Sequence record: NC_035464.1 | Length of the DNA: 9,780 bases | Reading direction: 5' to 3' (one strand) | Shown: positions 1 to 9,780 of the stretch, in pieces | How the letters are laid out: every line of letters starts with the position of its first letter | How positions within the stretch are numbered: the first letter of the stretch is position 1 | The notes under the pieces: model-generated | Told to the model about the DNA's origin: nothing | Seen by the model: only the letters and a program-made list of their open reading frames with translations | Databases searched by the model: none | Program-made: the position numbers and the translations under genes

Positions 1-318
1 CCCCCCCCCCCCATGCTGAAAGGGAGGGCGAGACCTAGCCTACCCCCCCCAGAGCAGGGGGTTTAAAAGCCACGTCAGTTTGACGGATCACCACGCAAGT
101 TGAACGCGGGGAGGGTTTAAATACCCCCCCTAGCATGAAAGCTTATTAACCCCAGGGGTTTTTGTCCTAATGCGAATGAGCAAATTACAGCCCATAATAC
201 GCCCTGCCCCGCCCTGCAAGTACACTTTACGACACAAACCGAAAGTAAACCTCAGAGTGAAGGGTTCTCTCCAACAGGGCAAAAAGCATTTTAACCCCCC
301 CATCACGACCTTCCGCAA
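1..318 (+). repeat. Left inverted terminal repeat (318 bp)
   Basis: Compared base by base with the reverse complement of 9463-9780: identical except at 17/9764 (T vs C) and 228/9553 (T vs A). Identity ends after TTCCGCAA at 318. Confidence 0.99.
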
Positions 319-410
319 AATAATTGGTCAGTCGTGGCTAAATTAAGTGAAGACTTTGTTTAGGTAGTTTCGGTGGAGGGTGTGGCTAATAAGGGACAGT
401 AAAGGTCACC

Positions 411-767
411 ATGTCGTCAAACCAGTCTAACCCAAAAAAGGAGGTCTCCCTGGAGGAGTTTTTTGAGGCCGTGAAGGACGAGGTGATCCCCCTGAGAATG
501 ATAGCGGGGGATTACGTAGTCCTAGAGGGCGTCCACATGGAGAACCTCAGGGACGGAAAGAACGGCAAGATAGTTGATGTGGTGGGCAGGATCGTCGTCA
601 CGAACATGGGCCTACCTGAGGGCCAGAAAGTCAGGTTCACGTTAGGCCTCTCGAACGCCATGGAAGTCGCCCATCATATAAAGGACGGCATAAAGTACAC
701 CATGATCAAGAAGGGGGAGATGAGGATAGTTGTTAATGGGTTTAGCGAGATCCCCAAGAGACTCTAG
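411..767 (+). CDS. Hypothetical protein, 118 aa; possible OB-fold ssDNA-binding protein
   Basis: ATG start and first gene after the left ITR. By eye the pattern is beta-beta-beta-alpha-beta-beta (YVVLEGV / IVDVVGRIVV / KVRFTL / SNAMEVAHHIKDG / YTMIKK / MRIVVN). The fold call is inference (about 0.3). Confidence 0.85.
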   Translation: MSSNQSNPKKEVSLEEFFEAVKDEVIPLRMIAGDYVVLEGVHMENLRDGKNGKIVDVVGRIVVTNMGLPEGQKVRFTLGLSNAMEVAHHIKDGIKYTMIKKGEMRIVVNGFSEIPKRL

Positions 768-1083
768 AGACGCTGAGGTATACCTAGTCAGGCCCCTGAA
801 GGGCGTTTTTTCCCTCCAAGACCACGCTTTTCTCGTCACGGTACGTGGCGTCTTCCCACGGAAGGGCGAGTTCACTCGAAAGAGCCACTGGGGCCTCATG
901 GTGGACGTGGACGTGGACGGCCTGTCCCTAAGGTTTAGGTCTAAACTCTACTTCACGTGGCAAGTGGAGATGGGCGGTAGGCCGTGGGCTTTCGTGCCCG
1001 TGTACGGCTGTGCCGATATAATCCAGGAGTACGGATACCAGAGAGGTGTGGCCATATGTCAAAAATTGAAGTTGAGCAGGTAG
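736..1083 (+). CDS. Hypothetical protein, about 115 aa
   Basis: The ORF track starts at TTG 730. ATG 736, downstream of GAGGA (722-726), is preferred. Overlaps the preceding gene; aromatic and beta-rich; no recognisable motif. Confidence 0.75.
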   Translation: MGLARSPRDSRDAEVYLVRPLKGVFSLQDHAFLVTVRGVFPRKGEFTRKSHWGLMVDVDVDGLSLRFRSKLYFTWQVEMGGRPWAFVPVYGCADIIQEYGYQRGVAICQKLKLSR

Positions 1084-1460
1084 TCAAGTACATATTGGAC
1101 CATCCTAGTACCTTCCTATGGTACAGGTGGTACCTGAGACAGAGGCACCACTTACCGTTCTTCTCGCTCACGTACAGTGAGGACTTACGACAGAAGGGGG
1201 TGCCAGTGGACATGACCAGGGATAAGGAGGTAGTCGTGTTGGTGCCTATATACACCCCATACGGCGTAGGCGGTGCTGAGGTCTTGTTGTCTACCCCAGA
1301 TAAGGTTATGTGGAGTGACGACGACTTCGCCTTCTTCGGCAACTGGAAGTTTTACGGGAAGTTCGCGTGGATGGTCTCGCTGAACCGAAAACACCCCCTG
1401 AGGCGGTACGCCCTGAACGAGATGAGGAAGGAGGCGAGGATGTATGCAGGCAAGTCCTGA
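1056..1460 (+). CDS. Hypothetical protein, 134 aa (aromatic- and Arg-rich)
   Basis: Start moved from 984 to ATG 1056, which follows the RBS GAGGTG (1043-1048) and gives only a short overlap with the previous gene. Confidence 0.85.
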   Translation: MSKIEVEQVVKYILDHPSTFLWYRWYLRQRHHLPFFSLTYSEDLRQKGVPVDMTRDKEVVVLVPIYTPYGVGGAEVLLSTPDKVMWSDDDFAFFGNWKFYGKFAWMVSLNRKHPLRRYALNEMRKEARMYAGKS

Positions 1461-2010
1461 CATGGGGGCATTAACCCGCGCAGGGTATAGAGTGACGGCC
1501 CGTTGGACGTGGAACGACGTCACTAGGGCCATGTATTGTTTTGAGACATCTAGGACAGCTAACGACTTCGTGGGGTGCGTCAAAAAGCGTAGGACTGACG
1601 CCCTCGCTGTCTACCGATACCTACGAGACGTCCAGTCCCATCAGGGACTGATATATGAGGTACTCCCGCCCGCATTCCAGGGCAACCCAGAGGAAGAGGA
1701 GGGGGAGGGGGAAGAGACTTGTATCACCTTCGTGGTCTACGACACGGGGTACTTCTTCCTCTGGGTAGACCCTAACCAGATCCTTCAAGACGCCTTAGAC
1801 GCTAACGCGACCATGAGGATCAAGTACCCTGGGGCCTACCGTGTCATCACCACGCCGTATGACCTAGATTTCTCTCAAATAGCGTGGAGGCCCATAGTGC
1901 CGTCGGGCGAGGACTACGTGATATGTAGTAACATGGACCGTGTGGACTTCAGTGACGCGATAGACAGGTACGTCAGACAGCTGAAGGCGATAATGGGGGC
2001 GATATCATGA
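1444..2010 (+). CDS. Hypothetical protein, 188 aa, with an acidic linker (PEEEEGEGEE)
   Basis: ATG 1444 (alternative ATG 1462 just after the upstream stop). Its TGA overlaps the next ATG (ATGA 2007-2010). Confidence 0.88.
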   Translation: MQASPDMGALTRAGYRVTARWTWNDVTRAMYCFETSRTANDFVGCVKKRRTDALAVYRYLRDVQSHQGLIYEVLPPAFQGNPEEEEGEGEETCITFVVYDTGYFFLWVDPNQILQDALDANATMRIKYPGAYRVITTPYDLDFSQIAWRPIVPSGEDYVICSNMDRVDFSDAIDRYVRQLKAIMGAIS

Positions 2011-2336
2011 TCACGTTAGACCACGATGTACCATATGACGGGTATAGACATTCGGCGAAAGGGAAACTCGTCGTTGAGTTTTGCAAGTCGTTCGAACTGA
2101 GGTGTTGGTATAGGCGTTCGTCTACTGGGAACGTCCACGTGGCTATCGACGTGGACGTGGACTTCCTCAGAGAGTTGGAAATCAGGGCCGTCTTACTCGA
2201 CGACCCCATGAGGATATTGAACGACTTGCGTCGGCACGCATTCCACATGCCTACTGGACGGCTCTGGGACGTGAAGGTGGATAGGGAAGGCAAAAGGCAG
2301 GCGGGCCAGTGGGAGGTCTTGTTCTCCCCTGAGTAG
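2007..2336 (+). CDS. Putative minimal AEP-superfamily primase/polymerase-like protein, 109 aa
   Basis: ATGA-coupled start. Motifs occur in AEP order: ITLDHD (hhhDxD; D5, D7), WYRRSSTGNVHV (SxxGxH; H44), LLDDP (D65/D66). The CDS is well supported; the function is inferred (about 0.5). Confidence 0.88.
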   Translation: MITLDHDVPYDGYRHSAKGKLVVEFCKSFELRCWYRRSSTGNVHVAIDVDVDFLRELEIRAVLLDDPMRILNDLRRHAFHMPTGRLWDVKVDREGKRQAGQWEVLFSPE

Positions 2337-2338
2337 GG

Positions 2339-2345
2339 TTTTTTA
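2339..2345 (+). terminator. T6 tract ending the first operon; may also serve as the TATA-like element of the next gene
   Basis: TTTTTTA lies 2 nt after the TAG at 2336 and 31 nt before ATG 2370. Oligo-T tracts are established archaeal intrinsic terminators. Confidence 0.6.
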
Positions 2346-2369
2346 CTCCACATATCCTACTTGTATCGT

Positions 2370-2747
2370 ATGAGTCAAAGTCAGCCTACTCAGGAACAAA
2401 CCCCCCCACAAGAGGAGGGGAAGGACGAGAGCCAGTGGACGGAATGTGAAGTCTGTGGGAAGAAAGTGCGGATGAACATGTACAAACGTCATATGTCTGC
2501 GGTGCATGGGTTCATTACGAAAGAGGAGTACCAGAGGCTCAAAGAGGAGGTGGAGAAGACTATACAATCTACGATACACAGTGCACTCCAGGAGCACTGG
2601 AAGGGGCACTACAAAAGCTTAAGCGAACTTCTTGAGGAAGGGGAAAAACATGCCGAGACGTGTCCTACATGCCAAAAGGAGTTGGAGGAGTGGCTCAAGA
2701 AAAAACGGAACGAGAAATACAAACCCGCTAATAGGAAGTGGCTCTAA
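2370..2747 (+). CDS. C2H2 zinc-finger protein, 125 aa (putative transcription regulator)
   Basis: CEVC-x11-H-x4-H at 2445-2507, a second HxxxCPTC cluster and a basic C-terminus. ATG 2370 is preferred over TTG 2361. C2H2 proteins are common in crenarchaeal viruses. Confidence 0.88.
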   Translation: MSQSQPTQEQTPPQEEGKDESQWTECEVCGKKVRMNMYKRHMSAVHGFITKEEYQRLKEEVEKTIQSTIHSALQEHWKGHYKSLSELLEEGEKHAETCPTCQKELEEWLKKKRNEKYKPANRKWL

Positions 2748-3209
2748 ATGACCAAGAAGAAGAAGGAGGAACAGGAGGCCCCTAAGGAGGAGGGGCAGGC
2801 CACTCCCGAAACCCCAAGTCCTGAAACCCCTCAGGAGCCTCAGAAGGAAGACCCCGTTCAGGTCATCATGAGGCTGACGACCGTAATACAGGAACAGCAG
2901 AAACGTATAGACCAGTTGGAAGCAAACCTCAACAGCGTGATGGAATTCCTGAAGGCACAATCCCAGGCACCCCAAGGTCAGGGAGGAGGAGGGGGTCTAG
3001 TGGAGGCACTAGTACCCCTCTTAGGGAAGTTGATGGAGCCTTCGAAAGACCCCCTACGGGATATCGCCCTAGAACTAATGATCGACAGCATGAAATCGAA
3101 CGTTGAGCTCTCGAAGGCCATAACACAGAAGATCATCCAAGGGGTGCAAGACCGAGTCGCGAGGAACGTCGTGGAGACTGTCGCCACGGGGGTGATTACA
3201 CACGAATGA
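2748..3209 (+). CDS. Coiled-coil protein, 153 aa, with a disordered E/P/Q-rich N-terminus
   Basis: TAA-ATG junction with the upstream gene; heptad-like segment IQEQQKRIDQLEANLNSVMEFL; Gly5 linker. Confidence 0.9.
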   Translation: MTKKKKEEQEAPKEEGQATPETPSPETPQEPQKEDPVQVIMRLTTVIQEQQKRIDQLEANLNSVMEFLKAQSQAPQGQGGGGGLVEALVPLLGKLMEPSKDPLRDIALELMIDSMKSNVELSKAITQKIIQGVQDRVARNVVETVATGVITHE

Positions 3210-3243
3210 GCGTATTAGAATTATCAACTTAACAAGGAAGTTA

Positions 3244-3366
3244 ATGATTGAACTGGGGGTGGGTACGTACTACCCCATGGTACAATACCGTCTTACCAGT
3301 CTCCCAGAGGAACAGATAAAGAGGGCGTATAAAATCATAAGGGATGAGGTGAAAACGTGGCCATAG
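3244..3366 (+). CDS. Small hypothetical protein, 40 aa (MIELGVGTYYPMVQYRLTSLPEEQIKRAYKIIRDEVKTWP); not in the ORF track
   Basis: Translated by hand. It fills the gap between two genes, looks helical and amphipathic, overlaps the next GTG start and contains that gene's RBS. The true start may lie upstream (see findings). Confidence 0.7.
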   Translation: MIELGVGTYYPMVQYRLTSLPEEQIKRAYKIIRDEVKTWP

Positions 3367-3674
3367 TCCATGAGGAGGTAACGTTTCATACTGAAGTGGA
3401 TGATGAGAGCGTAGAGGCAATCAGGAGGATCATAAGGGACCAGTGTGGAGAAAACCCAAAGCCTGAATGTTGGGGCCCGTTGGTGTGGTCCATGTTCGAC
3501 AGCGTGGCCCGTGCCATCCCGTGCCCAAAGTGCCGAGGGGAGGCACTGGAATTCCTGACCTTTTTGCATGATTTAATTAACATACAGAAGGGTAGTGCTA
3601 TATACAATACCCCGCAATTCCTTAGGAAGAAAAAGGAAGAGATACTGAGCCTACTCAGGACCCGAGGGATATAA
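3357..3674 (+). CDS. Miniature Erv1/Alr-like (poxvirus E10-type) sulfhydryl oxidase, 105 aa
   Basis: GTG start after GAGGTGA (3346-3352). Motifs NPKPECWGPLVW, IPCPKCR and FLHDLINIQKG match the Erv signature WGxxxW...PCxxC...HNxVNxxxG. The CDS is well supported; the function is inferred (about 0.65). Confidence 0.9.
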   Translation: MAIVHEEVTFHTEVDDESVEAIRRIIRDQCGENPKPECWGPLVWSMFDSVARAIPCPKCRGEALEFLTFLHDLINIQKGSAIYNTPQFLRKKKEEILSLLRTRGI

Positions 3675-3682
3675 TATAAATA
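3670..3682 (+). promoter_or_regulatory. TATA box of the structural-gene operon
   Basis: TATAATATAAATA in an otherwise GC-rich genome, with TATAAA at 3675-3680, 38 nt before ATG 3713. Confidence 0.65.
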
Positions 3683-3712
3683 GGAGAACTGATGTAACTA
3701 TGGTAGAGAGCC

Positions 3713-3979
3713 ATGGTGTCCAATAGAGAACTCGCCAAAAGGCTCAGCCAGTCGGCCAGGGAGGCGTGGAATTCAGAGGAGGGCATGAGGATCAGAGAGG
3801 AGCTAAGTGCAGACTCTGCCTCCTATGGGGCGTGTCTGAGGAGAGTCATGGAAAGTGGAGGAGGCAGTCGTGGTTACAAGGATTGCGCGAGGAGGTCAGG
3901 AATAGGTACGGCGTTTGCCAGTGTCTGGGGGTCTACAAAGGCCTATGGTAGGCCGATGGTGGAAGTAGTAGCGAGGTGA
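3713..3979 (+). CDS. Basic, helical 88-aa protein; candidate genome-coating nucleoprotein
   Basis: ATG start; first gene behind a strong TATA box; Arg/Ser/Gly-rich with two Cys. The function is inferred from position and charge. Confidence 0.88.
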   Translation: MVSNRELAKRLSQSAREAWNSEEGMRIREELSADSASYGACLRRVMESGGGSRGYKDCARRSGIGTAFASVWGSTKAYGRPMVEVVAR

Positions 3980-3984
3980 CCTAG

Positions 3985-4314
3985 GTGGACTTCTCCAGAC
4001 AAACGTGGGAGGGGCCAGTGGCTGTTGGCGTCGGCGGGTACGTGTGGAACAAGGTAAAGGGGAACACGCAAGTTCAGACGTTCGTGAGCAAGGTAGGTGG
4101 CAAGACGAATGCAGGGCTCATCTTAGTGGCCCTAGGCGTAGTCGCTAAGGCATACAAACCCGAGTCAGAAGCCATGAATATACTGGGGTACCTGTTGGCG
4201 GGACTCGGTGCGGGGGCACTCGGTGACGACTTGCCCGCCACTGGGTCACAGGCGACGTTTACGAATAAAAGCCCAGAGTACCCTAGTCCAGTTAGTGGGG
4301 TGAACGTGCTGTGA
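3985..4314 (+). CDS. Membrane protein, 109 aa (candidate virion internal-membrane protein)
   Basis: GTG after RBS GAGGTGA (3973-3979); hydrophobic GxxxG-rich segments (AGLILVALGVVA; ILGYLLAGLGAGALG). Confidence 0.88.
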   Translation: MDFSRQTWEGPVAVGVGGYVWNKVKGNTQVQTFVSKVGGKTNAGLILVALGVVAKAYKPESEAMNILGYLLAGLGAGALGDDLPATGSQATFTNKSPEYPSPVSGVNVL

Positions 4315-4724
4315 AACTCTACATGAAAACGATTGAGATCCAATATTCCATCCCTGCGAGTGCACCATCCGAGTCACAGGTGCCTGGAGTGTTCATAGAC
4401 CTCTCCAGTGGCACTAGCCAAGGCCAACTCCAAGTCCCCGTGAACCAAGAGTGGGTCATCATAGACGTCTACAACAGGGGGTCTCAGGACGTCGGCGTAG
4501 ATGCCGTGGCGACGTTCACTAAGAACAGCGTCTCCAACGTCCTCACTACGGACCCAGTCTCATCCCTGAACATCTCGAACCCATCCAGACCAACCTACCC
4601 GCCAATACAGATGGCCCCAGGGACGATATTGACCTCCAAAGTCACTACGCTCACGTCCAACGGCACTAGTGCGGCCGTGGATAACCTATTCATAAAGGTC
4701 AAGATCATAGACTACTCGCAGTAA
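4311..4724 (+). CDS. Beta-rich 137-aa protein; candidate single jelly-roll major capsid protein
   Basis: GTGA-coupled start after GGGGTGA (4297-4303); alternative ATG 4323. Alternating hydrophobic beta patterns throughout (TIEIQYSI, EWVIIDVYN, DAVATFTK, TILTSKVTT, LFIKVKII), no TM segment, last gene of a strongly promoted operon. The MCP call is inference (about 0.5). Confidence 0.9.
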   Translation: MKLYMKTIEIQYSIPASAPSESQVPGVFIDLSSGTSQGQLQVPVNQEWVIIDVYNRGSQDVGVDAVATFTKNSVSNVLTTDPVSSLNISNPSRPTYPPIQMAPGTILTSKVTTLTSNGTSAAVDNLFIKVKIIDYSQ

Positions 4725-4743
4725 ACACGCGTAAGACATCTCC

Positions 4744-4750
4744 TTTTTTA
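4744..4750 (+). terminator. T6 tract ending the core structural operon; possible promoter element for 4773
   Basis: TTTTTTA lies 19 nt after the TAA at 4724 and 29 nt before ATG 4773. Confidence 0.6.
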
Positions 4751-4772
4751 GTAGTATTTCCTTCTTTATAGT

Positions 4773-5450
4773 ATGGCATGCCAGACTATACAAGACCTAT
4801 CGATAGGCCCGTACACCATAGAATCGGGTCAGGTCTGTGTGGAGGGCACTACCTCAGGGACGGCTAGCCTGACTATGAAAGTGGGGCCGTTCACGTACAC
4901 CAAGACTATCCCATGGGGGGCGGTAAACCCCCAACAGACGTTGGGTACGTCCTCAGGGAGGGTCTACCTTATCGGGACGAACCCCCTGTCGTCACTCCTA
5001 GTGGACGACGTCCTAACGGTGGCTGAGTATGCACAGAAAGTGGCGTCGTACTTAGGGTACAGCGGTTCGTTTTCCATAGTGAACGTGGGTTTGACGAATG
5101 GCTCAGACTGCAACGACTGTGTAGTTTACGTGGACTACGTCGCCTCTTCTCCTCCTCTTGCGGTAGCCCTAGTGATCGCTCTCGTGATCGTTTTCGTCAT
5201 AGCTATCGTATTGGGTATCTATTTCATTTCGGCCGCGATAGAGAGTTTTCAGCCCGCACCTCCCACGCCCCCTCCTCCAGGGAGTCCCCCGTCCCTGTAC
5301 CAACAGTACTACCAGGAGTACGCCCAGTATTTGAAGGAGAAACAAACGGCCTCAATCACGGGAGGGGTATTCGGCACGTCCACGGCCCTAGTGGCGTTAG
5401 GGATAGCCATTTTAGCCTTCTTGGCGTTTACTGACCATGGTGGGAAGTGA
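4773..5450 (+). CDS. Membrane-anchored virion protein, 225 aa (beta-rich N-domain, two TM helices, poly-Pro linker)
   Basis: ATG start; TMs LAVALVIALVIVFVIAIVLGIYFI and TALVALGIAILAFLAF; PAPPTPPPPGSPP linker; four Cys including CNDC. Confidence 0.92.
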   Translation: MACQTIQDLSIGPYTIESGQVCVEGTTSGTASLTMKVGPFTYTKTIPWGAVNPQQTLGTSSGRVYLIGTNPLSSLLVDDVLTVAEYAQKVASYLGYSGSFSIVNVGLTNGSDCNDCVVYVDYVASSPPLAVALVIALVIVFVIAIVLGIYFISAAIESFQPAPPTPPPPGSPPSLYQQYYQEYAQYLKEKQTASITGGVFGTSTALVALGIAILAFLAFTDHGGK

Positions 5451-5734
5451 TGGTGTACCAGATATACGACGGGCAATACACGGTTTACCCCGTGGGAAAC
5501 CCCCAGGTCACGCTCATCAGGGTAGACGTAGCGGGGAGAGTGAAAATCATGATCCTCCCCACGGTGTCAGAGGCCCTTCAACTGACCCTGAACGGAAACT
5601 CAGGTTACCTGAACCAGGGAAACGTCCTCTCGGCGGGAAATTGGTACGAGTTCGAATACGTGAGTTGTGGGAAAGACATCATAAGCATAAATGGGACACA
5701 GCAAGGAGTTTACCTTAGGGTGATAGTGTATTGA
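5447..5734 (+). CDS. Small beta-rich protein, about 95 aa; candidate penton/vertex protein
   Basis: GTGA-coupled start (or ATG 5450); all-beta pattern (TLIRVDV, VKIMIL, LQLTLN, WYEFEYV, IISIN, VYLRVIVY); lies directly upstream of the spike candidate. Confidence 0.85.
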   Translation: MMVYQIYDGQYTVYPVGNPQVTLIRVDVAGRVKIMILPTVSEALQLTLNGNSGYLNQGNVLSAGNWYEFEYVSCGKDIISINGTQQGVYLRVIVY

Positions 5735-6750
5735 TTAGAGGTCAGATACACAAACTCTCCAAGTGGGAGTTAAGGGACTACGCTAGGACACTAGTCCCCG
5801 TCTTTGAATCCCACGAGGTGGACGGCACTAGGGACATGAAAATCGTGGACGCCGTGATATCGTACGCCATGAAAGGGACGAAACCCTGGCTGAGGAGGGG
5901 GTCAGCCCTCCAGGGCTTTATAGGGCCTAGGATGTCTGTCCTCGAGGGTTACCTCATCTTCCCCACGTCAGGTATTGAGCCCGTGACCATCCAGTCCACT
6001 ACCCTAGAGAACTCCTACCTAGTCCTAGATATCGTGGGGGCAGGTGGAGGAGGTGGTGGTGGAGGTGGTGGGAACACCACGGCCACTACCCCGTTCGCCC
6101 AGGGTGGTGGAGGTGGGGGAGACGGTGGCCGTCTCATTATCAGGACCCAGGGGCCACTAGTCTCTGGGACCCAGTTCACAGCCCAACTGGGAGGGCCAGG
6201 TGGGACAGGTGGAGGGACAGGTGCCACAGGGACACCAGGTTCAGCACCAAACGGGGCGACTCAGGTAGTCCTAGGGAACGGCACACTCACGCTCAGTGTG
6301 TCAGGTGCGTCAGCCCCTACCATGCCCCCGACAGCAGGAGGACAGGAGGCAGGAGGGTCAGGAGGTGCAGGAGGGTCAGCAGTGTTCACGTACTTGCCAA
6401 CGACGCCCATATTCTCGGCCATACAGTTGAACCCAAGGACGTCCTTCCTCTCGAATTACTCGGGCGTACTGGACCAGGGTATTGGTGGAGACGGCGTTGG
6501 GTCTGAGTACTTCACCCTGTCCAACGCCACGCCTATATTCGTCTCGACGCCACAAGGAACGAGGGTCACTGGGGGAAGCCCAGGGGGCACAGGCACCTCA
6601 GCCACGGCGAACGTCCCCTCTGGGGCAATCCCGCTCAGGGGGTCAGGTGCAGGAGGAGGAGGGGGACAGAACTCCTCTTCCGCCCCAACAGCGGGAGGGA
6701 ACGGCGGGTCTGGAGGGCCTGGACCTATCATTATCTTGGTGATAGGATGA
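5731..6750 (+). CDS. Glycine-rich spike/turret (receptor-binding) protein, 339 aa
   Basis: TTGA-coupled TTG start after GGGTGA (5718-5723). The pattern hDhVGAGGGGG...GGGGGxGG...GGxGGxGG...GSGAGGGGG...GGNGGSG resembles the glycine-rich domains of phage tail and spike proteins. Confidence 0.9.
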   Translation: MIRGQIHKLSKWELRDYARTLVPVFESHEVDGTRDMKIVDAVISYAMKGTKPWLRRGSALQGFIGPRMSVLEGYLIFPTSGIEPVTIQSTTLENSYLVLDIVGAGGGGGGGGGGNTTATTPFAQGGGGGGDGGRLIIRTQGPLVSGTQFTAQLGGPGGTGGGTGATGTPGSAPNGATQVVLGNGTLTLSVSGASAPTMPPTAGGQEAGGSGGAGGSAVFTYLPTTPIFSAIQLNPRTSFLSNYSGVLDQGIGGDGVGSEYFTLSNATPIFVSTPQGTRVTGGSPGGTGTSATANVPSGAIPLRGSGAGGGGGQNSSSAPTAGGNGGSGGPGPIIILVIG

Positions 6751-6965
6751 CAGACTTGGTCACCGTGGCAGTGTTAGGGGTACAGACGGCCGTTTTCATC
6801 TACGCTAGTGCCAAACTGAGGAAGATGAGCGAGATGGCCGACAAGTTGGCGTCAGCCCTGTCCAACATAGCAAAGGAGATAGAGACGGCGTCCATGGACA
6901 TGAAAAGCATACAAAGGGAGATGACAGAACTGGAAGACTTAATTCGGACAGCACTGAGGGAATAG
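6747..6965 (+). CDS. 72-aa protein with an N-terminal TM helix and a coiled coil
   Basis: ATGA-coupled, RBS GGTGA (6738-6742); hydrophobic LVTVAVLGVQTAVFIYA followed by heptads. Confidence 0.88.
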   Translation: MTDLVTVAVLGVQTAVFIYASAKLRKMSEMADKLASALSNIAKEIETASMDMKSIQREMTELEDLIRTALRE

Positions 6966-6967
6966 GT

Positions 6968-7378
6968 ATGAGCTGTCAGACATGTGGTCAGCAGGGCGTG
7001 TGTTACGTCCTGGAACACGTGGGTACTGAGCCCATCTATATAAACGGGCAACAGTACGGCCAGGGCGACTTTTGTTTCTCCTCCCCTGAGCTCACGATAG
7101 AATACCAGGGCGTACAGTACCAGATCGACATGTCCTACGCCCCCACAGTGCAGAACATATACGGGTGTTGTCCCTCAGGTACCACAGCCAAACTCACGAC
7201 GGTGACTACGATACAGGGACAGAACACTCCCATATTCGTCCCGTATGCCGTCCTAGTGTCTCAAGGTACCACGTCCACTAGTAGTACCACGCCTAGTGTC
7301 CTAAGTAAGGTACCGTGGTGGCTCATCATACTACTCGTCATACTGGGGGCTATACTCCTAGGAGGAGGAAACCCATGA
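6968..7378 (+). CDS. Cys-rich tail-anchored virion protein, 136 aa
   Basis: ATG 2 nt after the upstream stop; six Cys; Thr/Ser stalk; C-terminal TM WWLIILLVILGAILL. Confidence 0.9.
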   Translation: MSCQTCGQQGVCYVLEHVGTEPIYINGQQYGQGDFCFSSPELTIEYQGVQYQIDMSYAPTVQNIYGCCPSGTTAKLTTVTTIQGQNTPIFVPYAVLVSQGTTSTSSTTPSVLSKVPWWLIILLVILGAILLGGGNP

Positions 7379-8481
7379 ATTACACTTGGTACGTGCAGAA
7401 CCAAGACCCCTCGACGATCCAGTTCTGTGTCATGCAGTCTGGAGGGTATAACAACTGCACCTCAATACCAGGGAACAGCACAGAGCCGTTCACGATACCA
7501 GACATGGACGTGCAGATATATGGCACCCCCACGGGGTACTACGTGTACTACTCTAGCGTTGGGGTGAAGACTAGTACCAAGTCCCTCCCGTCATCAGGAT
7601 CAACGATCACGGTGCCCCCATACACGGGATGTGACCCCCTACTCACGCAAGGACAGGGGTACCCCCCACTCGTGCCGTGTTCGTCCCCGTTGATCTTCCT
7701 GAAGAGCGAGAGCACCCCTGCCATGTTTATCGAGAACTGGGGGGCAGAGACGTCAGGGTTTTCATACGGGTACGGGATAGCGGGGAGCCAATTGGCCATA
7801 GCGACAGGGCCAAACTGGGTATACTACCGACAGTACCCCCAGGCACAGGTATACCTTATCGGAAACTGGAAGGTGGTGAACGGAAACTACGTAGACATGG
7901 ACTCGGGGAAAACGTTCTGTGGGTGCCAGGGGAAGAGCGTGTACGTCATACCCACGTCTGACCTACCTGGGCCGTCCTCAGGGACTACGTCCACAGGGAC
8001 TAGTACCACGGGGACTTCCACGAGTACAACAGGGACTCCCACAGGGACGTCCACTCAGCAGACGACACAGCCCACGACAGGTATCCTGAACGTGGCTAAC
8101 CAGTGTTCGACGGGGGTAGTCGTGTACGCGGGAGGGAAAACGGCATACGCACCCCCATACCATTCCATCAGCCTAGAAGTACCCATCCCCACGGGGTATA
8201 CGCTTATTAGCCAGGGTCAGACAGTTGGTAAGGGGACGGTGTACCAGAGCGGGGAGTACGTGTCCCCAAGTTCTTGTCCCTCTGTTAGCCCTACACCCAG
8301 CCCTACCCCGACACCGTCCCCAACTGGGGGACAGACCACTTCCACGACTACGACTACCACGACTACCCAGACCACTTCAACACAGACTACCCAGAACACA
8401 CAGCCCCCAACGACGCCTAGCATGTCGTGGGGTCTTATCCTACTCTTGGTAATCCTGGGGGCACTAGCCCTCTCAAGTTAA
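7375..8481 (+). CDS. Multi-domain tail-anchored virion/adhesin-like protein, 368 aa
   Basis: Start moved from 7315 to the ATGA-coupled ATG 7375 after GGAGGAGG (7361-7368). Beta-rich domains separated by Thr/Ser/Pro stalks; eight Cys; C-terminal TM WGLILLLVILGALAL. Confidence 0.92.
   Translation: MNYTWYVQNQDPSTIQFCVMQSGGYNNCTSIPGNSTEPFTIPDMDVQIYGTPTGYYVYYSSVGVKTSTKSLPSSGSTITVPPYTGCDPLLTQGQGYPPLVPCSSPLIFLKSESTPAMFIENWGAETSGFSYGYGIAGSQLAIATGPNWVYYRQYPQAQVYLIGNWKVVNGNYVDMDSGKTFCGCQGKSVYVIPTSDLPGPSSGTTSTGTSTTGTSTSTTGTPTGTSTQQTTQPTTGILNVANQCSTGVVVYAGGKTAYAPPYHSISLEVPIPTGYTLISQGQTVGKGTVYQSGEYVSPSSCPSVSPTPSPTPTPSPTGGQTTSTTTTTTTTQTTSTQTTQNTQPPTTPSMSWGLILLLVILGALALSS
7981..8055 (+). repeat. Imperfect tandem GGGAC...CCAC repeats encoding GT(T/S)(S/T)T units
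   Basis: gggactacgtccaca / gggactagtaccacg / gggacttccacg / gggactcccaca / gggacgtccact. Confidence 0.75.
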
Positions 8482-8483
8482 GC

Positions 8484-8490
8484 TTTTTTA
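8484..8490 (+). terminator. T6 tract ending the second structural operon
   Basis: TTTTTTA 2 nt after the TAA at 8481. Confidence 0.65.
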
Positions 8491-8605
8491 GTCCAGGTCT
8501 CCCATTATACCTGAGCGGTGCGAGGTGGATGTGACGGGAGGCTCTGGGAATGTCCGAGAGACGGAGGCGTACCCGTCCTCCACTGCACCGCACTAGGTGA
8601 GTCAC

Positions 8606-8836
8606 ATGAGCCAAGTCCCAAAGAAGAGACTCGGGGCAAGGGTCATCAGAGCGGTTTTCAACGGGGTCTCCTTAGGCATCCTAGGAGGGGCAGGAGTGTA
8701 CGTCCTAGCCCAGGGGGTGAACACGTTATCAGGCACCACTACTTTGAACCCTACGGCGTTTCTCCTGTTGGTCTTGGGGGCGTCCATCACGGCCAGTGTG
8801 GGGATAGAACTCTCCAAGGACCTAAGCGGTGAGTAG
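8606..8836 (+). CDS. Small two-TM membrane protein, 76 aa
   Basis: ATG 8606 follows RBS AGGTGA (8595-8600); GTG 8597 is an alternative. Basic N-terminus and two hydrophobic helices (GVSLGILGGAGVYVLA; AFLLLVLGASITASVGI). Confidence 0.85.
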   Translation: MSQVPKKRLGARVIRAVFNGVSLGILGGAGVYVLAQGVNTLSGTTTLNPTAFLLLVLGASITASVGIELSKDLSGE

Positions 8837-8852
8837 TCTCAGTCAAGTCTCC

Positions 8853-8861
8853 TTTATTTTA
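8853..8861 (+). promoter_or_regulatory. TATA-like box for the apparently leaderless gene at 8885
   Basis: TTTATTTTA starts 32 nt before ATG 8885, the same spacing as the promoter at 9462/9430. It may also terminate the 8606 gene. Confidence 0.55.
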
Positions 8862-8884
8862 CCCCCTGAACCAATAGACCCAAA

Positions 8885-9124
8885 ATGGATGTCCAAACCC
8901 AACTCAAAGAATGGATTTCCCTGTTGGACGACAGGCTGTCGTCCATAGAAATGAGCCTCAAGTCCCTCCAAAAGAGACTTGAGCAGGCAGAAAAGCGACA
9001 AGAAGAACTTGAGGAGGCGTTCGACCAGCTGAAAGAAGAAATAGACGACTGTGTGGCTGACACGACCTACCTCCACGACGTACTGGAGGAGGTCCAAGAC
9101 GACATAGACGACCTAAGGAAGTGA
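8885..9124 (+). CDS. Acidic coiled-coil protein, 79 aa
   Basis: Continuous heptads (LSSIEMSLKSLQKRLEQAEKRQEELEEAFDQLKEEI); GTGA overlap with the next gene. Confidence 0.88.
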   Translation: MDVQTQLKEWISLLDDRLSSIEMSLKSLQKRLEQAEKRQEELEEAFDQLKEEIDDCVADTTYLHDVLEEVQDDIDDLRK

Positions 9125-9342
9125 GCCCCGTGGAGTTCGTATACAAGATCAACGACGACACGGTCACAGTGTGGGTCACTGACGAGAAGACGGGGAAGAA
9201 AGTGGCGTCCCTACAAATGCCGAAGAAGGACGTGGACTACGTCGCGAGACGTGCAATACAAGAACTCGACATAGCCCCAGATGAGGCATACGACTTAGCG
9301 GTCTACTTCACCTACGTTAAGGTCACCTGGGGCCTCCTCTGA
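9121..9342 (+). CDS. Hypothetical protein, 73 aa (beta-hairpin plus helices)
   Basis: GTGA-coupled start; typical codon usage; followed by a T6 tract. Confidence 0.85.
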   Translation: MSPVEFVYKINDDTVTVWVTDEKTGKKVASLQMPKKDVDYVARRAIQELDIAPDEAYDLAVYFTYVKVTWGLL

Positions 9343-9430
9343 ACCTCTTTTTTCTCTCGTACTTACCCCTGACCCTACGGTCAGGCTCTACTTCTCTCAC
9401 GAACCTGACTCCCCCATCCTCATCAAACAT
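9323..9430 (-). CDS. Small Arg/Lys-rich protein, 35 aa (MFDEDGGVRFVREVEPDRRVRGKYERKKRFRGGPR); not in the ORF track
   Basis: Translated by hand. The ATG lies 32 nt from the start of a perfect TATA box; codons (AGG/AGA, GAG, AAG, GTC) match the real genes; convergent 20-nt overlap with the 9121 gene. Confidence 0.65.
   Translation of the reverse strand: MFDEDGGVRFVREVEPDRRVRGKYERKKRFRGGPR
9348..9353 (+). terminator. T6 tract after the last + strand gene
   Basis: TTTTTT in a pyrimidine-rich context, 5 nt after the TGA at 9342. Confidence 0.6.
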
Positions 9431-9452
9431 ATGATTTATTTCACAGCAGGGC

Positions 9453-9462
9453 TTTATATAAA
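9453..9462 (-). promoter_or_regulatory. Palindromic TATA box TTTATATAAA abutting the right ITR
   Basis: On the - strand the sequence reads ttccgcaa-TTTATATAAA-gccctgctgtg-aaataaatcat-ATG: a canonical TATA, an AT-rich -10 region and near-leaderless spacing typical of Sulfolobales promoters. Confidence 0.75.
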
Positions 9463-9780
9463 TTGCGGAAGGTCGTGATGGGGGGGTTAAAATGCTTTTT
9501 GCCCTGTTGGAGAGAACCCTTCACTCTGAGGTTTACTTTCGGTTTGTGTCGTTAAGTGTACTTGCAGGGCGGGGCAGGGCGTATTATGGGCTGTAATTTG
9601 CTCATTCGCATTAGGACAAAAACCCCTGGGGTTAATAAGCTTTCATGCTAGGGGGGGTATTTAAACCCTCCCCGCGTTCAACTTGCGTGGTGATCCGTCA
9701 AACTGACGTGGCTTTTAAACCCCCTGCTCTGGGGGGGGTAGGCTAGGTCTCGCCCTCCCTTTCGGCATGGGGGGGGGGGG
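9463..9780 (-). repeat. Right inverted terminal repeat (318 bp)
   Basis: Reverse complement of 1-318 with two mismatches; ends in G12. Confidence 0.99.

Follow-up and report, generated by a model that had tools for sequence, protein, structure and literature searches.

How is a linear double-stranded DNA (dsDNA) genome bounded by inverted terminal repeats (ITRs) copied to its very ends when it encodes no recognizable replicase, and how is it enclosed in a capsid when no packaging ATPase is apparent? These questions are raised by the DNA examined here, a stretch of 9,780 nucleotides (nt) referred to below as the window. Megablast against phage and archaeal-virus records matched the whole window to MF443783.1/NC_035464.1 at 9780 of 9780 bases (100% identity), and these records hold Metallosphaera turreted icosahedral virus (MTIV) strain MTIV1, sourced from a Yellowstone acidic hot spring at pH 2.1 and 80 °C (Wagner et al. 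2017). The window is the entire linear dsDNA genome of MTIV1, published before. The copying and protection of ends in polymerase-less linear archaeal viruses are unsolved for several families, and MTIV suits the question well: its genome is among the smallest of this kind (9.8 kb, 21 genes), it is culturable, and five or six proteins are candidates for nonstructural roles.

An earlier interpretation of the same letters, made without database searches (the sequence-only reading), had suspected MTIV and proposed a BLASTN comparison, the outcome of which settles the identity in its favor. It had also held that ITR-bearing linear viruses typically possess either a protein-primed family B DNA polymerase (PolB) or hairpin ends with an HUH Rep, and had concluded that this genome relies on the small operon at 411-2336 together with host enzymes, an apparently uncharacterized end-replication strategy. 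Overall, that interpretation is partly supported. Reliance on the left operon and the host is a plausible proposal, which our comparison refines by setting the core genes gp04 and gp05 apart from the clade-restricted gp01 to gp03. The dichotomy is overstated, because a third class is documented in PH1, SH1, and HHIV-2: their long ITRs are accompanied by terminal proteins, a polymerase gene is lacking, and Streptomyces-like patching of the ends by a host polymerase has been proposed for them (PMC3622292). As for the strategy, a 2018 review from the MTIV laboratory regarded the ITRs as probably involved in replication and left the choice between protein-primed and self-primed replication to be determined (PMC5867849); the mode of priming is therefore a known open problem and not a newly seen anomaly. 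The absence of a recognizable replicase in MTIV1 was likewise already known and restates the published state of this virus. What our analysis adds is the remote homology of the capsid protein to VP4 of Sulfolobus polyhedral virus 1 (SPV1), the conservation of oligo(dC) ends, sequence motifs confined to the ITRs, a joint difference of left end and ITRs between related genomes, and the delineation of a protein family around gp05.

Absence of recognizable replication and packaging genes

MTIV1 encodes no recognizable DNA polymerase, primase, helicase, or packaging ATPase. The annotation comprises 21 genes, all on the plus strand, and a Pfam search of the 21 proteins together with long alternative and minus-strand open reading frames (ORFs) yielded no polymerase, primase, helicase, Rep, integrase, resolvase, terminase, or ATPase; the outcome for these functions was the same when 10 proteins (gp01 to gp07, gp15, gp18, and gp21) were compared with NCBIfam. 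With PHROGs, 10 proteins (gp01 to gp07, gp09, gp10, and gp21) returned MTIV-only families alone and no replicase- or ATPase-type match. Sequence and profile searches of the PDB with gp01 to gp05 found no polymerase, primase, helicase, Rep, integrase, resolvase, or ATPase, Foldseek fold searches found no replication or ATPase protein, and there was no match to Hjc or any other Holliday-junction resolvase in Pfam, PHROGs, or NCBIfam. Patterns for PolB motifs A, B, and C, for HUH, and for Walker B were absent from every real ORF. The Walker A pattern [AG]x4GK[ST] had two matches in six frames, one in a stop-ridden minus-strand frame and the other in the final eight residues of gp03 (ARMYAGKS, 1434-1457); the latter was rejected as a hidden P-loop, the tail being missing or different in most gp03 homologues.

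The longest ORF, of 388 amino acids (aa) or, as annotated, 368 aa (7315/7375-8481), is followed by one of 339 aa (5731-6750), and annotated proteins do not exceed 368 and 339 aa. The statements of the sequence-only reading on gene content thus hold up after profile and fold searches: no ORF has PolB motifs or approaches the size of a protein-primed PolB, its denial of any Walker A motif is right in substance, and no conventional replicase or packaging ATPase emerged. Its description of the two longest ORFs as structural in type also fits, gp15 being annotated as structural and gp18 probably being a surface or turret protein.

The relatives of MTIV1 present the same picture. MTIV2 (9895 nt), MTIV3 (12.7 kb), and a record named "SPV3" (18 kb) share with MTIV1 a core of gp04, gp05, and gp09 to gp14 at 29 to 59% identity, the capsid protein c137 being the best conserved. 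Scanning JGI metagenomes with an alignment of capsid proteins gave 65 loci (numbered here with the prefix L, as are the other relatives), including near-complete genomes of 9 to 10 kb (L012, L045, L047, and L050) and a distant 13.8-kb contig with a capsid protein 41% identical (L067), and IMG/VR supplied an additional genome of 9591 nt (L006). MTIV4 is linear, with 13.9 kb and 109-bp ITRs, functions for 5 of its 30 genes, and maintenance in a sequencing-checked host-virus co-culture (2026 preprint, 10.64898/2026.06.04.730037). The larger ORFs (up to 587 aa) of MTIV3, "SPV3," and L067 contain no replicase or ATPase domain, and ITRs are present in independent assemblies of MTIV2 (354 nt), MTIV3 (at least 162 nt), L006 (319 nt), and L045 (387 nt). 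Linearity, ITRs, and the lack of a recognizable replicase are thus properties of the whole MTIV group.

Genome ends and ITR-confined motifs

The 318-bp ITRs described in the sequence-only reading were recovered by inverted-repeat detection (Table 1); the arms, both of which were read, differ at positions 17 and 228. Each 5' end is a run of 12 C. MTIV2 ends in 11 and 12 C, and the terminal motif of MTIV4 ends in G11 in nanopore reads (10.64898/2026.06.04.730037). Because C12 in MTIV1 is matched by C11/C12 in MTIV2 and G11 in MTIV4, the terminal homopolymer is a conserved feature of slightly variable length and not a tailing artifact. The MTIV3 record (L003, OQ473814) differs in that its end, positions 1 to 60, is made up of tandem 13-mers, GCGTCTCGCGGCA, in place of the homopolymer seen in MTIV1, MTIV2, and MTIV4.

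Short motifs are concentrated in the repeats. The G-run/TTTAAA pattern of the type GGGTTTAAA gave 10 overlapping matches against 0.46 expected, which mark three sites per ITR, two of them direct and one inverted, and none elsewhere. Runs of at least seven C number four per ITR, always on the 5'-ended strand, with one in the rest of the genome; those of the outer left ITR include 43-50 and 124-130, and the terminal run with its neighboring sequence (5-22) recurs at 124-141. An inner block of about 55 nt is 92% identical between MTIV1 and MTIV2 (blastn) and is also kept in L006, unlike the outer ITR, which diverges fast among lineages. Self-folding of the ITR strand did not rise above that of shuffled controls (z = -0.75), and parvovirus-like self-priming terminal hairpins are not indicated.

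Table 1. Positions of the features of the MTIV1 genome considered in the text
Feature	Position	Strand	Remarks
Left ITR	1-318		Inverted-repeat detection, 318 nt, 99% complementary; sequence read
Terminal oligo(dC)12	1-12	+	Mirrored at 9769-9780; 3' end of opposite strand is oligo(dG)12
Two direct G-run/TTTAAA elements	56-68 (GGGGGTTTAAAAG) and 110-130 (GGGAGGGTTTAAATACCCCCCC)	+	Within region 56-130
Inner ITR block, TTCTCTCCAACAGGGCAAAA..TTTTAACCCCCCCATCACGACCTTCCG	264-316	+	Mirrored at about 9465-9517; holds third, inverted, G-run/TTAAAA element
gp01 (c118)	411-767	+	First gene of left operon; no known fold; in MTIV1/2-like genomes only
gp02 (a115)	736-1083	+	Basic, pI 9.8; most divergent gene between lineages (29-81% identity)
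gp03 (c134)	1056-1460	+	Basic, pI 9.4; nonconserved C-terminal AGKS
gp04 (a188)	1444-2010	+	Core gene; helical conserved N-terminal domain (about residues 8-64), acidic linker, C-terminal domain
gp05 (c109)	2007-2336	+	Core gene, 109 aa; 4-nt overlap with gp04
gp06 (c125)	2370-2747	+	Zinc finger C-x2-C-x12-H-x4-H and C-terminal CxxC; between left operon and structural genes
gp09 (c105)	3357-3674	+	Virion protein; Erv1/ALR-like sulfhydryl oxidase signature
gp10 (b88)	3713-3979	+	Basic virion protein, pI 9.8
gp12 (c137)	4311-4724	+	Major capsid protein; remote homologue of SPV1 VP4, single jelly-roll
gp15 (a339)	5731-6750	+	Virion protein with glycine-rich domain; one of two longest ORFs
gp18 (a368)	7375-8481	+	Longest ORF; Thr/Ser/Pro-rich tracts, hydrophobic C terminus
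Unannotated basic 35-aa ORF, MFDEDGGVRFVREVEPDRRVRGKYERKKRFRGGPR	9326-9430	minus	Just inside right ITR, behind TTTATATA (TTTATATAAAG) box
Right ITR	9463-9780		Partner arm of left ITR; sequence read

Joint difference of the left end and the ITRs

Between MTIV1 and MTIV2, identity is complete (100%) at positions 2328 to 9427 and only 35 to 65% over positions 1 to 2000; it climbs across gp05 (2028-2327) and is about 40% in the outer right ITR (9528-9780). The left 2 kb, which holds the left ITR and gp01 to gp04, and the outer right ITR differ as one unit, so that both ITR copies have changed along with gp01 to gp04. The sequences themselves show that some process of correction keeps the left and right ITR copies alike. 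Across the metagenomic genomes, gp01 to gp04 fall into sharply separated types, with about 75 to 95%, about 62%, or 30 to 55% identity to MTIV1, and gp05 to gp14 lie at roughly 50 to 95%, mostly 70 to 90%. Direct G4TTTAAA copies are present in lineages with MTIV1-type gp01 to gp04 (the window, L006, L027, and L038) and not in those with MTIV2-type gp01 to gp04 (L002, L045, L047, and L031). We infer from the joint difference that the products of gp01 to gp04 may recognize their own ITR.

The first three genes of this module are hypervariable and confined to the MTIV1/2 clade; lineage-wide profiles of gp01, gp02, and gp03 had no match in the PDB, and a large-database search with gp03 found relatives only in MTIV-like contigs. 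A paralogous relationship of gp02 to gp05, both of which contain DVDVD, was rejected by hhalign. The core genes gp04 and gp05 are common to MTIV1, MTIV3, and "SPV3." The product of gp04 is a candidate ITR- or DNA-binding factor, the structure model of which was poor (predicted local distance difference test [pLDDT] score of 52), so that the fold search on it was uninformative. Beyond the operon, gp06 is probably a DNA-binding regulator, as suggested by its zinc finger, for which Pfam matches were weak (DUF7576 at 7.5e-5 and zf-Di19).

gp05, an orphan enzyme-like protein

An HMMER search of 1.84 billion representative proteins placed gp05 in a family of 119 clusters (E up to 0.001), nearly all of them stand-alone proteins of 100 to 170 aa. 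Residues D5, R36, S38, R60, D66, R69, and W102 are invariant throughout the family, and D7, H44, D65, D73, R76, K90, and G100 are nearly so. The AlphaFold model (pLDDT 75.6; low confidence at residues 60 to 88) shows a beta-alpha-beta-beta-alpha arrangement followed by a small sheet, an alpha/beta ferredoxin-like organization. The product of gp05 is a conserved enzyme-like protein and the founder of a wide family of small proteins without known relatives.

The motifs hhhDxD, RxSxxGxxH, and DD of gp05 are look-alikes, in order and spacing, of motifs I to III (DxD/E, sGxxH, and D) of the archaeo-eukaryotic primases (AEPs). In the best hhalign path between gp05 and pRN1-type Prim-Pol domains, the first two motifs fall on their counterparts (I on I, II on II), at a probability of 0.5% and an E value of 0.13. 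Among the weak Foldseek matches, LigD polymerase domains turned up repeatedly (E 0.8 to 2, TM about 0.37), the best E value being no lower than 0.49, and nothing significant was found in the PDB and BFVD beyond MTIV relatives and one 116-aa viral protein. Pfam searches of 94 family members gave no Prim-Pol match at an E value of 0.01 and nothing recurrent, and at a permissive threshold of 10 a single member matched LigD_Prim-Pol (E 0.15); PDB sequence and profile searches with gp05 returned matches at chance level only, for example, to the Spt6 SH2 domain (E 0.1 to 1). With all similarity scores at chance level, gp05 was rejected as a known enzyme and is assigned neither to the AEPs nor to any other known family.

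Distant gp05 homologues are also encoded on small contigs of orphan genes in the Logan assemblies ERR14373512, SRR31012007, ERR14373516, and SRR13205815 (L072 to L075), in which an MTIV-type capsid gene was not detected; the homologue in L075 is preceded by a 180-aa ORF that overlaps it by 4 nt, an arrangement like that of gp04 and gp05 in MTIV. Members of the gp05 family may occur outside MTIV-like viruses.

Capsid and missing packaging motor

Five virion structural proteins are annotated in MTIV1 (c105, b88, a109, c137, and a339). A profile of the MTIV-group capsid protein matched SPV1 VP4 (PDB 6oj0) with an E value of 1.7e-7 over about 100 residues, and all five aligned capsid homologues matched Pfam PF25646 (best E 8.1e-7), MTIV1 itself scoring 22.9 bits, under the curated cutoff of 27. 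SPV1 has no genome-packaging ATPase and is regarded as an early stage in the evolution of single jelly-roll viruses (PMC8812541). Since VP4, to which the capsid protein of MTIV is homologous, comes from a virus that itself lacks a packaging ATPase, the missing ATPase of MTIV is expected rather than anomalous, and MTIV thus belongs with the motor-less single jelly-roll viruses, a placement that bears on models of the origin of icosahedral dsDNA viruses. Among the other virion proteins, the basic gp10 is a candidate genome-condensing protein.

Comparison with known systems

The closest parallels in genome organization are SH1, PH1, and HHIV-2 (Sphaerolipoviridae) and the linear replicons of Streptomyces, which share with MTIV linear dsDNA, ITRs of about 300 bp, and the lack of a polymerase gene. 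The genomes of SH1, PH1, and HHIV-2 are, however, three times larger than that of MTIV, and terminal proteins of their own have been demonstrated; they also encode a packaging ATPase, whereas none is recognizable in MTIV. SPV1 (Portogloboviridae) infects a host of the Sulfolobales and has an internal membrane and a circular genome of about 20 kb. Its VP4-type single jelly-roll capsid protein and the lack of a packaging ATPase are the likenesses to MTIV, in which tblastn detected no protein similarity to SPV1 beyond the capsid; the linear, ITR-bearing 9.8-kb genome of MTIV differs from the circular dsDNA genome of the Portogloboviridae. The pair of MTIV and SPV1 mirrors the situation of SH1, PH1, and HHIV-2, which have circular relatives with related capsids, the halovirus group mixing linear (SH1 and PH1) and circular (SNJ1) genomes (PMC3622292). 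The protein-primed PolB viruses (Tectiviridae, phi29-like viruses, Ampullaviridae, and His1) resemble MTIV in linearity, ITRs, and a reiterated terminal nucleotide that would permit sliding-back, but MTIV has no family B polymerase or ORF of that length. The Rudiviridae, like MTIV, are crenarchaeal viruses with linear, ITR-bearing genomes and no polymerase; in MTIV, by contrast, no HUH Rep or Holliday-junction resolvase was found, and the virion is icosahedral and not rod shaped.

Proposed mode of replication and its alternatives

We suggest that MTIV1 is replicated by the host replisome, that its ends are maintained by virus-supplied factors of novel fold, and that encapsidation is free of a motor, and we put the probability of this combined reading at about 45%. 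Bulk DNA synthesis would be carried out by the replisome of Metallosphaera, and the virus would contribute only small proteins of novel fold from the left-end operon, with gp04 and gp05 as the conserved core and gp01 to gp03, together with the zinc-finger protein gp06, as lineage-specific DNA-recognition or regulatory factors. These proteins would act on cis elements of the ITRs, namely, the terminal oligo(dC)/(dG) run, the G-run/TTTAAA elements, and the conserved inner block. In the version that we prefer, the ends would follow the scheme of SH1, PH1, and HHIV-2 or of Streptomyces, with a 5'-linked protein that primes or patches opposite the 3' oligo(dG); the homopolymer would permit slippage, and the two ITR copies would correct each other. 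The capsid and membrane would assemble, in the manner proposed for SPV1, around DNA that gp10 and other small basic virion proteins would have condensed.

Several points weigh against this proposal. To our knowledge, a terminal protein has been shown for no MTIV, and we know of no Sulfolobales polymerase that uses a protein primer; nor is a terminal protein recognizable by sequence in MTIV. Motor-free packaging is extrapolated from the absence of an ATPase and from a distant relative in capsid type, the genome of which is circular. The correlation between ITR and gp01 to gp04 divergence among ten lineages was weak (Spearman 0.41, from a crude identity measure and nonindependent pairs), in a test that is itself weak, as the identity of divergent noncoding DNA saturates near 0.7, and the swap between MTIV1 and MTIV2 could be explained by plain physical linkage. 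Finally, the invariant residues of gp05 may point to a viral catalytic activity of an unrecognized kind as central, which would weaken the notion that the host does everything. In a bolder form of this last argument, the gp04-gp05 pair would be the catalytic heart of a new type of linear-DNA end replication with gp05 as its key component; gp05 might act as a miniature primase or nucleotidyl transferase, initiating synthesis on the 3' oligo(dG) run, or else attach dCMP to a protein that would serve a host polymerase as primer. We regard this form as a long shot.

The remaining alternatives differ in what they require of the virus. Covalently closed hairpin termini of the rudivirus or poxvirus kind, replicated through head-to-head and tail-to-tail concatemers and opened by an unrecognized viral nuclease, would fit with long ITRs without a polymerase, which are typical of rudiviruses, and with the concerted change of both ITR copies; the small conserved gp05 would be the candidate nuclease, given its invariant acidic, basic, and histidine residues and a D...D-x-K-like pattern (D65/D66, D88, and K90). 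Such termini are nevertheless unlikely, as there is no HUH motif, no match to Hjc or another resolvase, and no conserved tyrosine in gp05; folding of the ITR strand is unremarkable, although this alone does not decide whether the ends are closed, and assemblies from several sources and the nanopore ends of MTIV4 all halt at the homopolymer run, without read-through round a loop. A circular or concatemeric intermediate, formed by recombination or annealing of the ITRs, copied by the host from an internal origin, and resolved into linear units at packaging, would accord with the circularity of SPV1, with the coexistence of linear and circular genomes in the halovirus group, and with the homogenization of the ITR copies, for which the conserved inner block could serve as a recombination site. 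We consider it improbable, since Pfam and PHROGs revealed no recognizable recombinase, integrase, or terminase and since precise, conserved homopolymer termini would be unexpected from the terminase-free cutting of concatemers.

A hidden viral replicase, that is, an orphan protein that initiates DNA synthesis at the oligo(dG) ends as a primase or nucleotidyl transferase of a new, minimal type, would find its best candidate in gp05, with or without gp04. The AEP-like order and spacing of the gp05 motifs, the predicted fold, the recurrence of LigD domains, the register of the Prim-Pol alignment, and the large size of a family made up of small proteins throughout are all in keeping with this idea. 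It is very unlikely on the evidence, however, because each of these similarities to AEPs is insignificant, the Pfam search of the family was negative at its stringent threshold, the model is of low confidence in the segment around D65 and D66, and the 109 aa of gp05 amount to about half of the smallest known AEP catalytic core. That MTIV1 is not autonomous, needing a helper virus or being a fragment of a larger polymerase-bearing replicon, has the lack of replication genes as the sole point in its favor. Complete ITR-bounded genomes are known from several independent isolates and assemblies, and the virus has been isolated. Because no relatives of the capsid protein or gp05 were found in 185,579 prokaryotic species-representative genomes (one genome per species) and MTIV4 grows in co-culture with its host, a provirus, a larger replicon, and a helper are all argued against, and dependence of this kind is extremely improbable. 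Whichever mechanism operates, the comparative data narrow the focus to the gp04/gp05 core as opposed to the variable gp01 to gp03, to the ITR-confined motifs and homopolymer ends, and to the naturally occurring swap that involves the left end and both ITRs.

Other features of the genome

No RNA gene was detected in the window by Rfam or by a tRNA scan. The GC skew rises steadily to about position 4500 and is flat beyond; because every gene is on one strand, no origin was read from it. A scan of the window for promoters and terminators of the bacterial type was uninformative for an archaeal virus.

Of the virion proteins, gp09 belongs to a family with the invariants WGPxxW, PCPxC, and HDxxNxxxG, the signature of FAD-linked sulfhydryl oxidases of the Erv1/ALR type; weak Pox_E10 matches were obtained for 8 of 11 members, and the top eight PDB profile matches were all sulfhydryl oxidases, at E values of only 0.06 to 0.8. 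An archaeal virus would be unusual in carrying a thiol oxidase in its virion. The glycine-rich gp15 and its homologues in MTIV3 (L003) and "SPV3" (L004) matched Pfam Gly_rich_2 (PF21722) at or near the curated cutoff, and gp15 is possibly a turret or vertex protein. The composition of gp18 is that of a protein that is probably exposed at the surface or in a turret and not an enzyme.

The unannotated 35-aa ORF next to the right ITR is intact in L006, L045, L047, L055, and L012, with in-frame indels and 67 to 77% identity, and has a partial match (26 of 35 residues) in L026. It would be the sole candidate for a minus-strand gene and a mirror of the left operon.

The "SPV3" record (Sulfolobus polyhedral virus 3; L004, OQ473816; 1-18040) contains two MTIV core modules, at about 1400-5300 and 12100-16300, and an inverted repeat, one arm of which lies at 8865-8941 and the other at the right end (17964-18040). 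Because of these two modules and the repeat, the record looks like two related genomes joined, the second half resembling a complete linear genome of about 9.2 kb.

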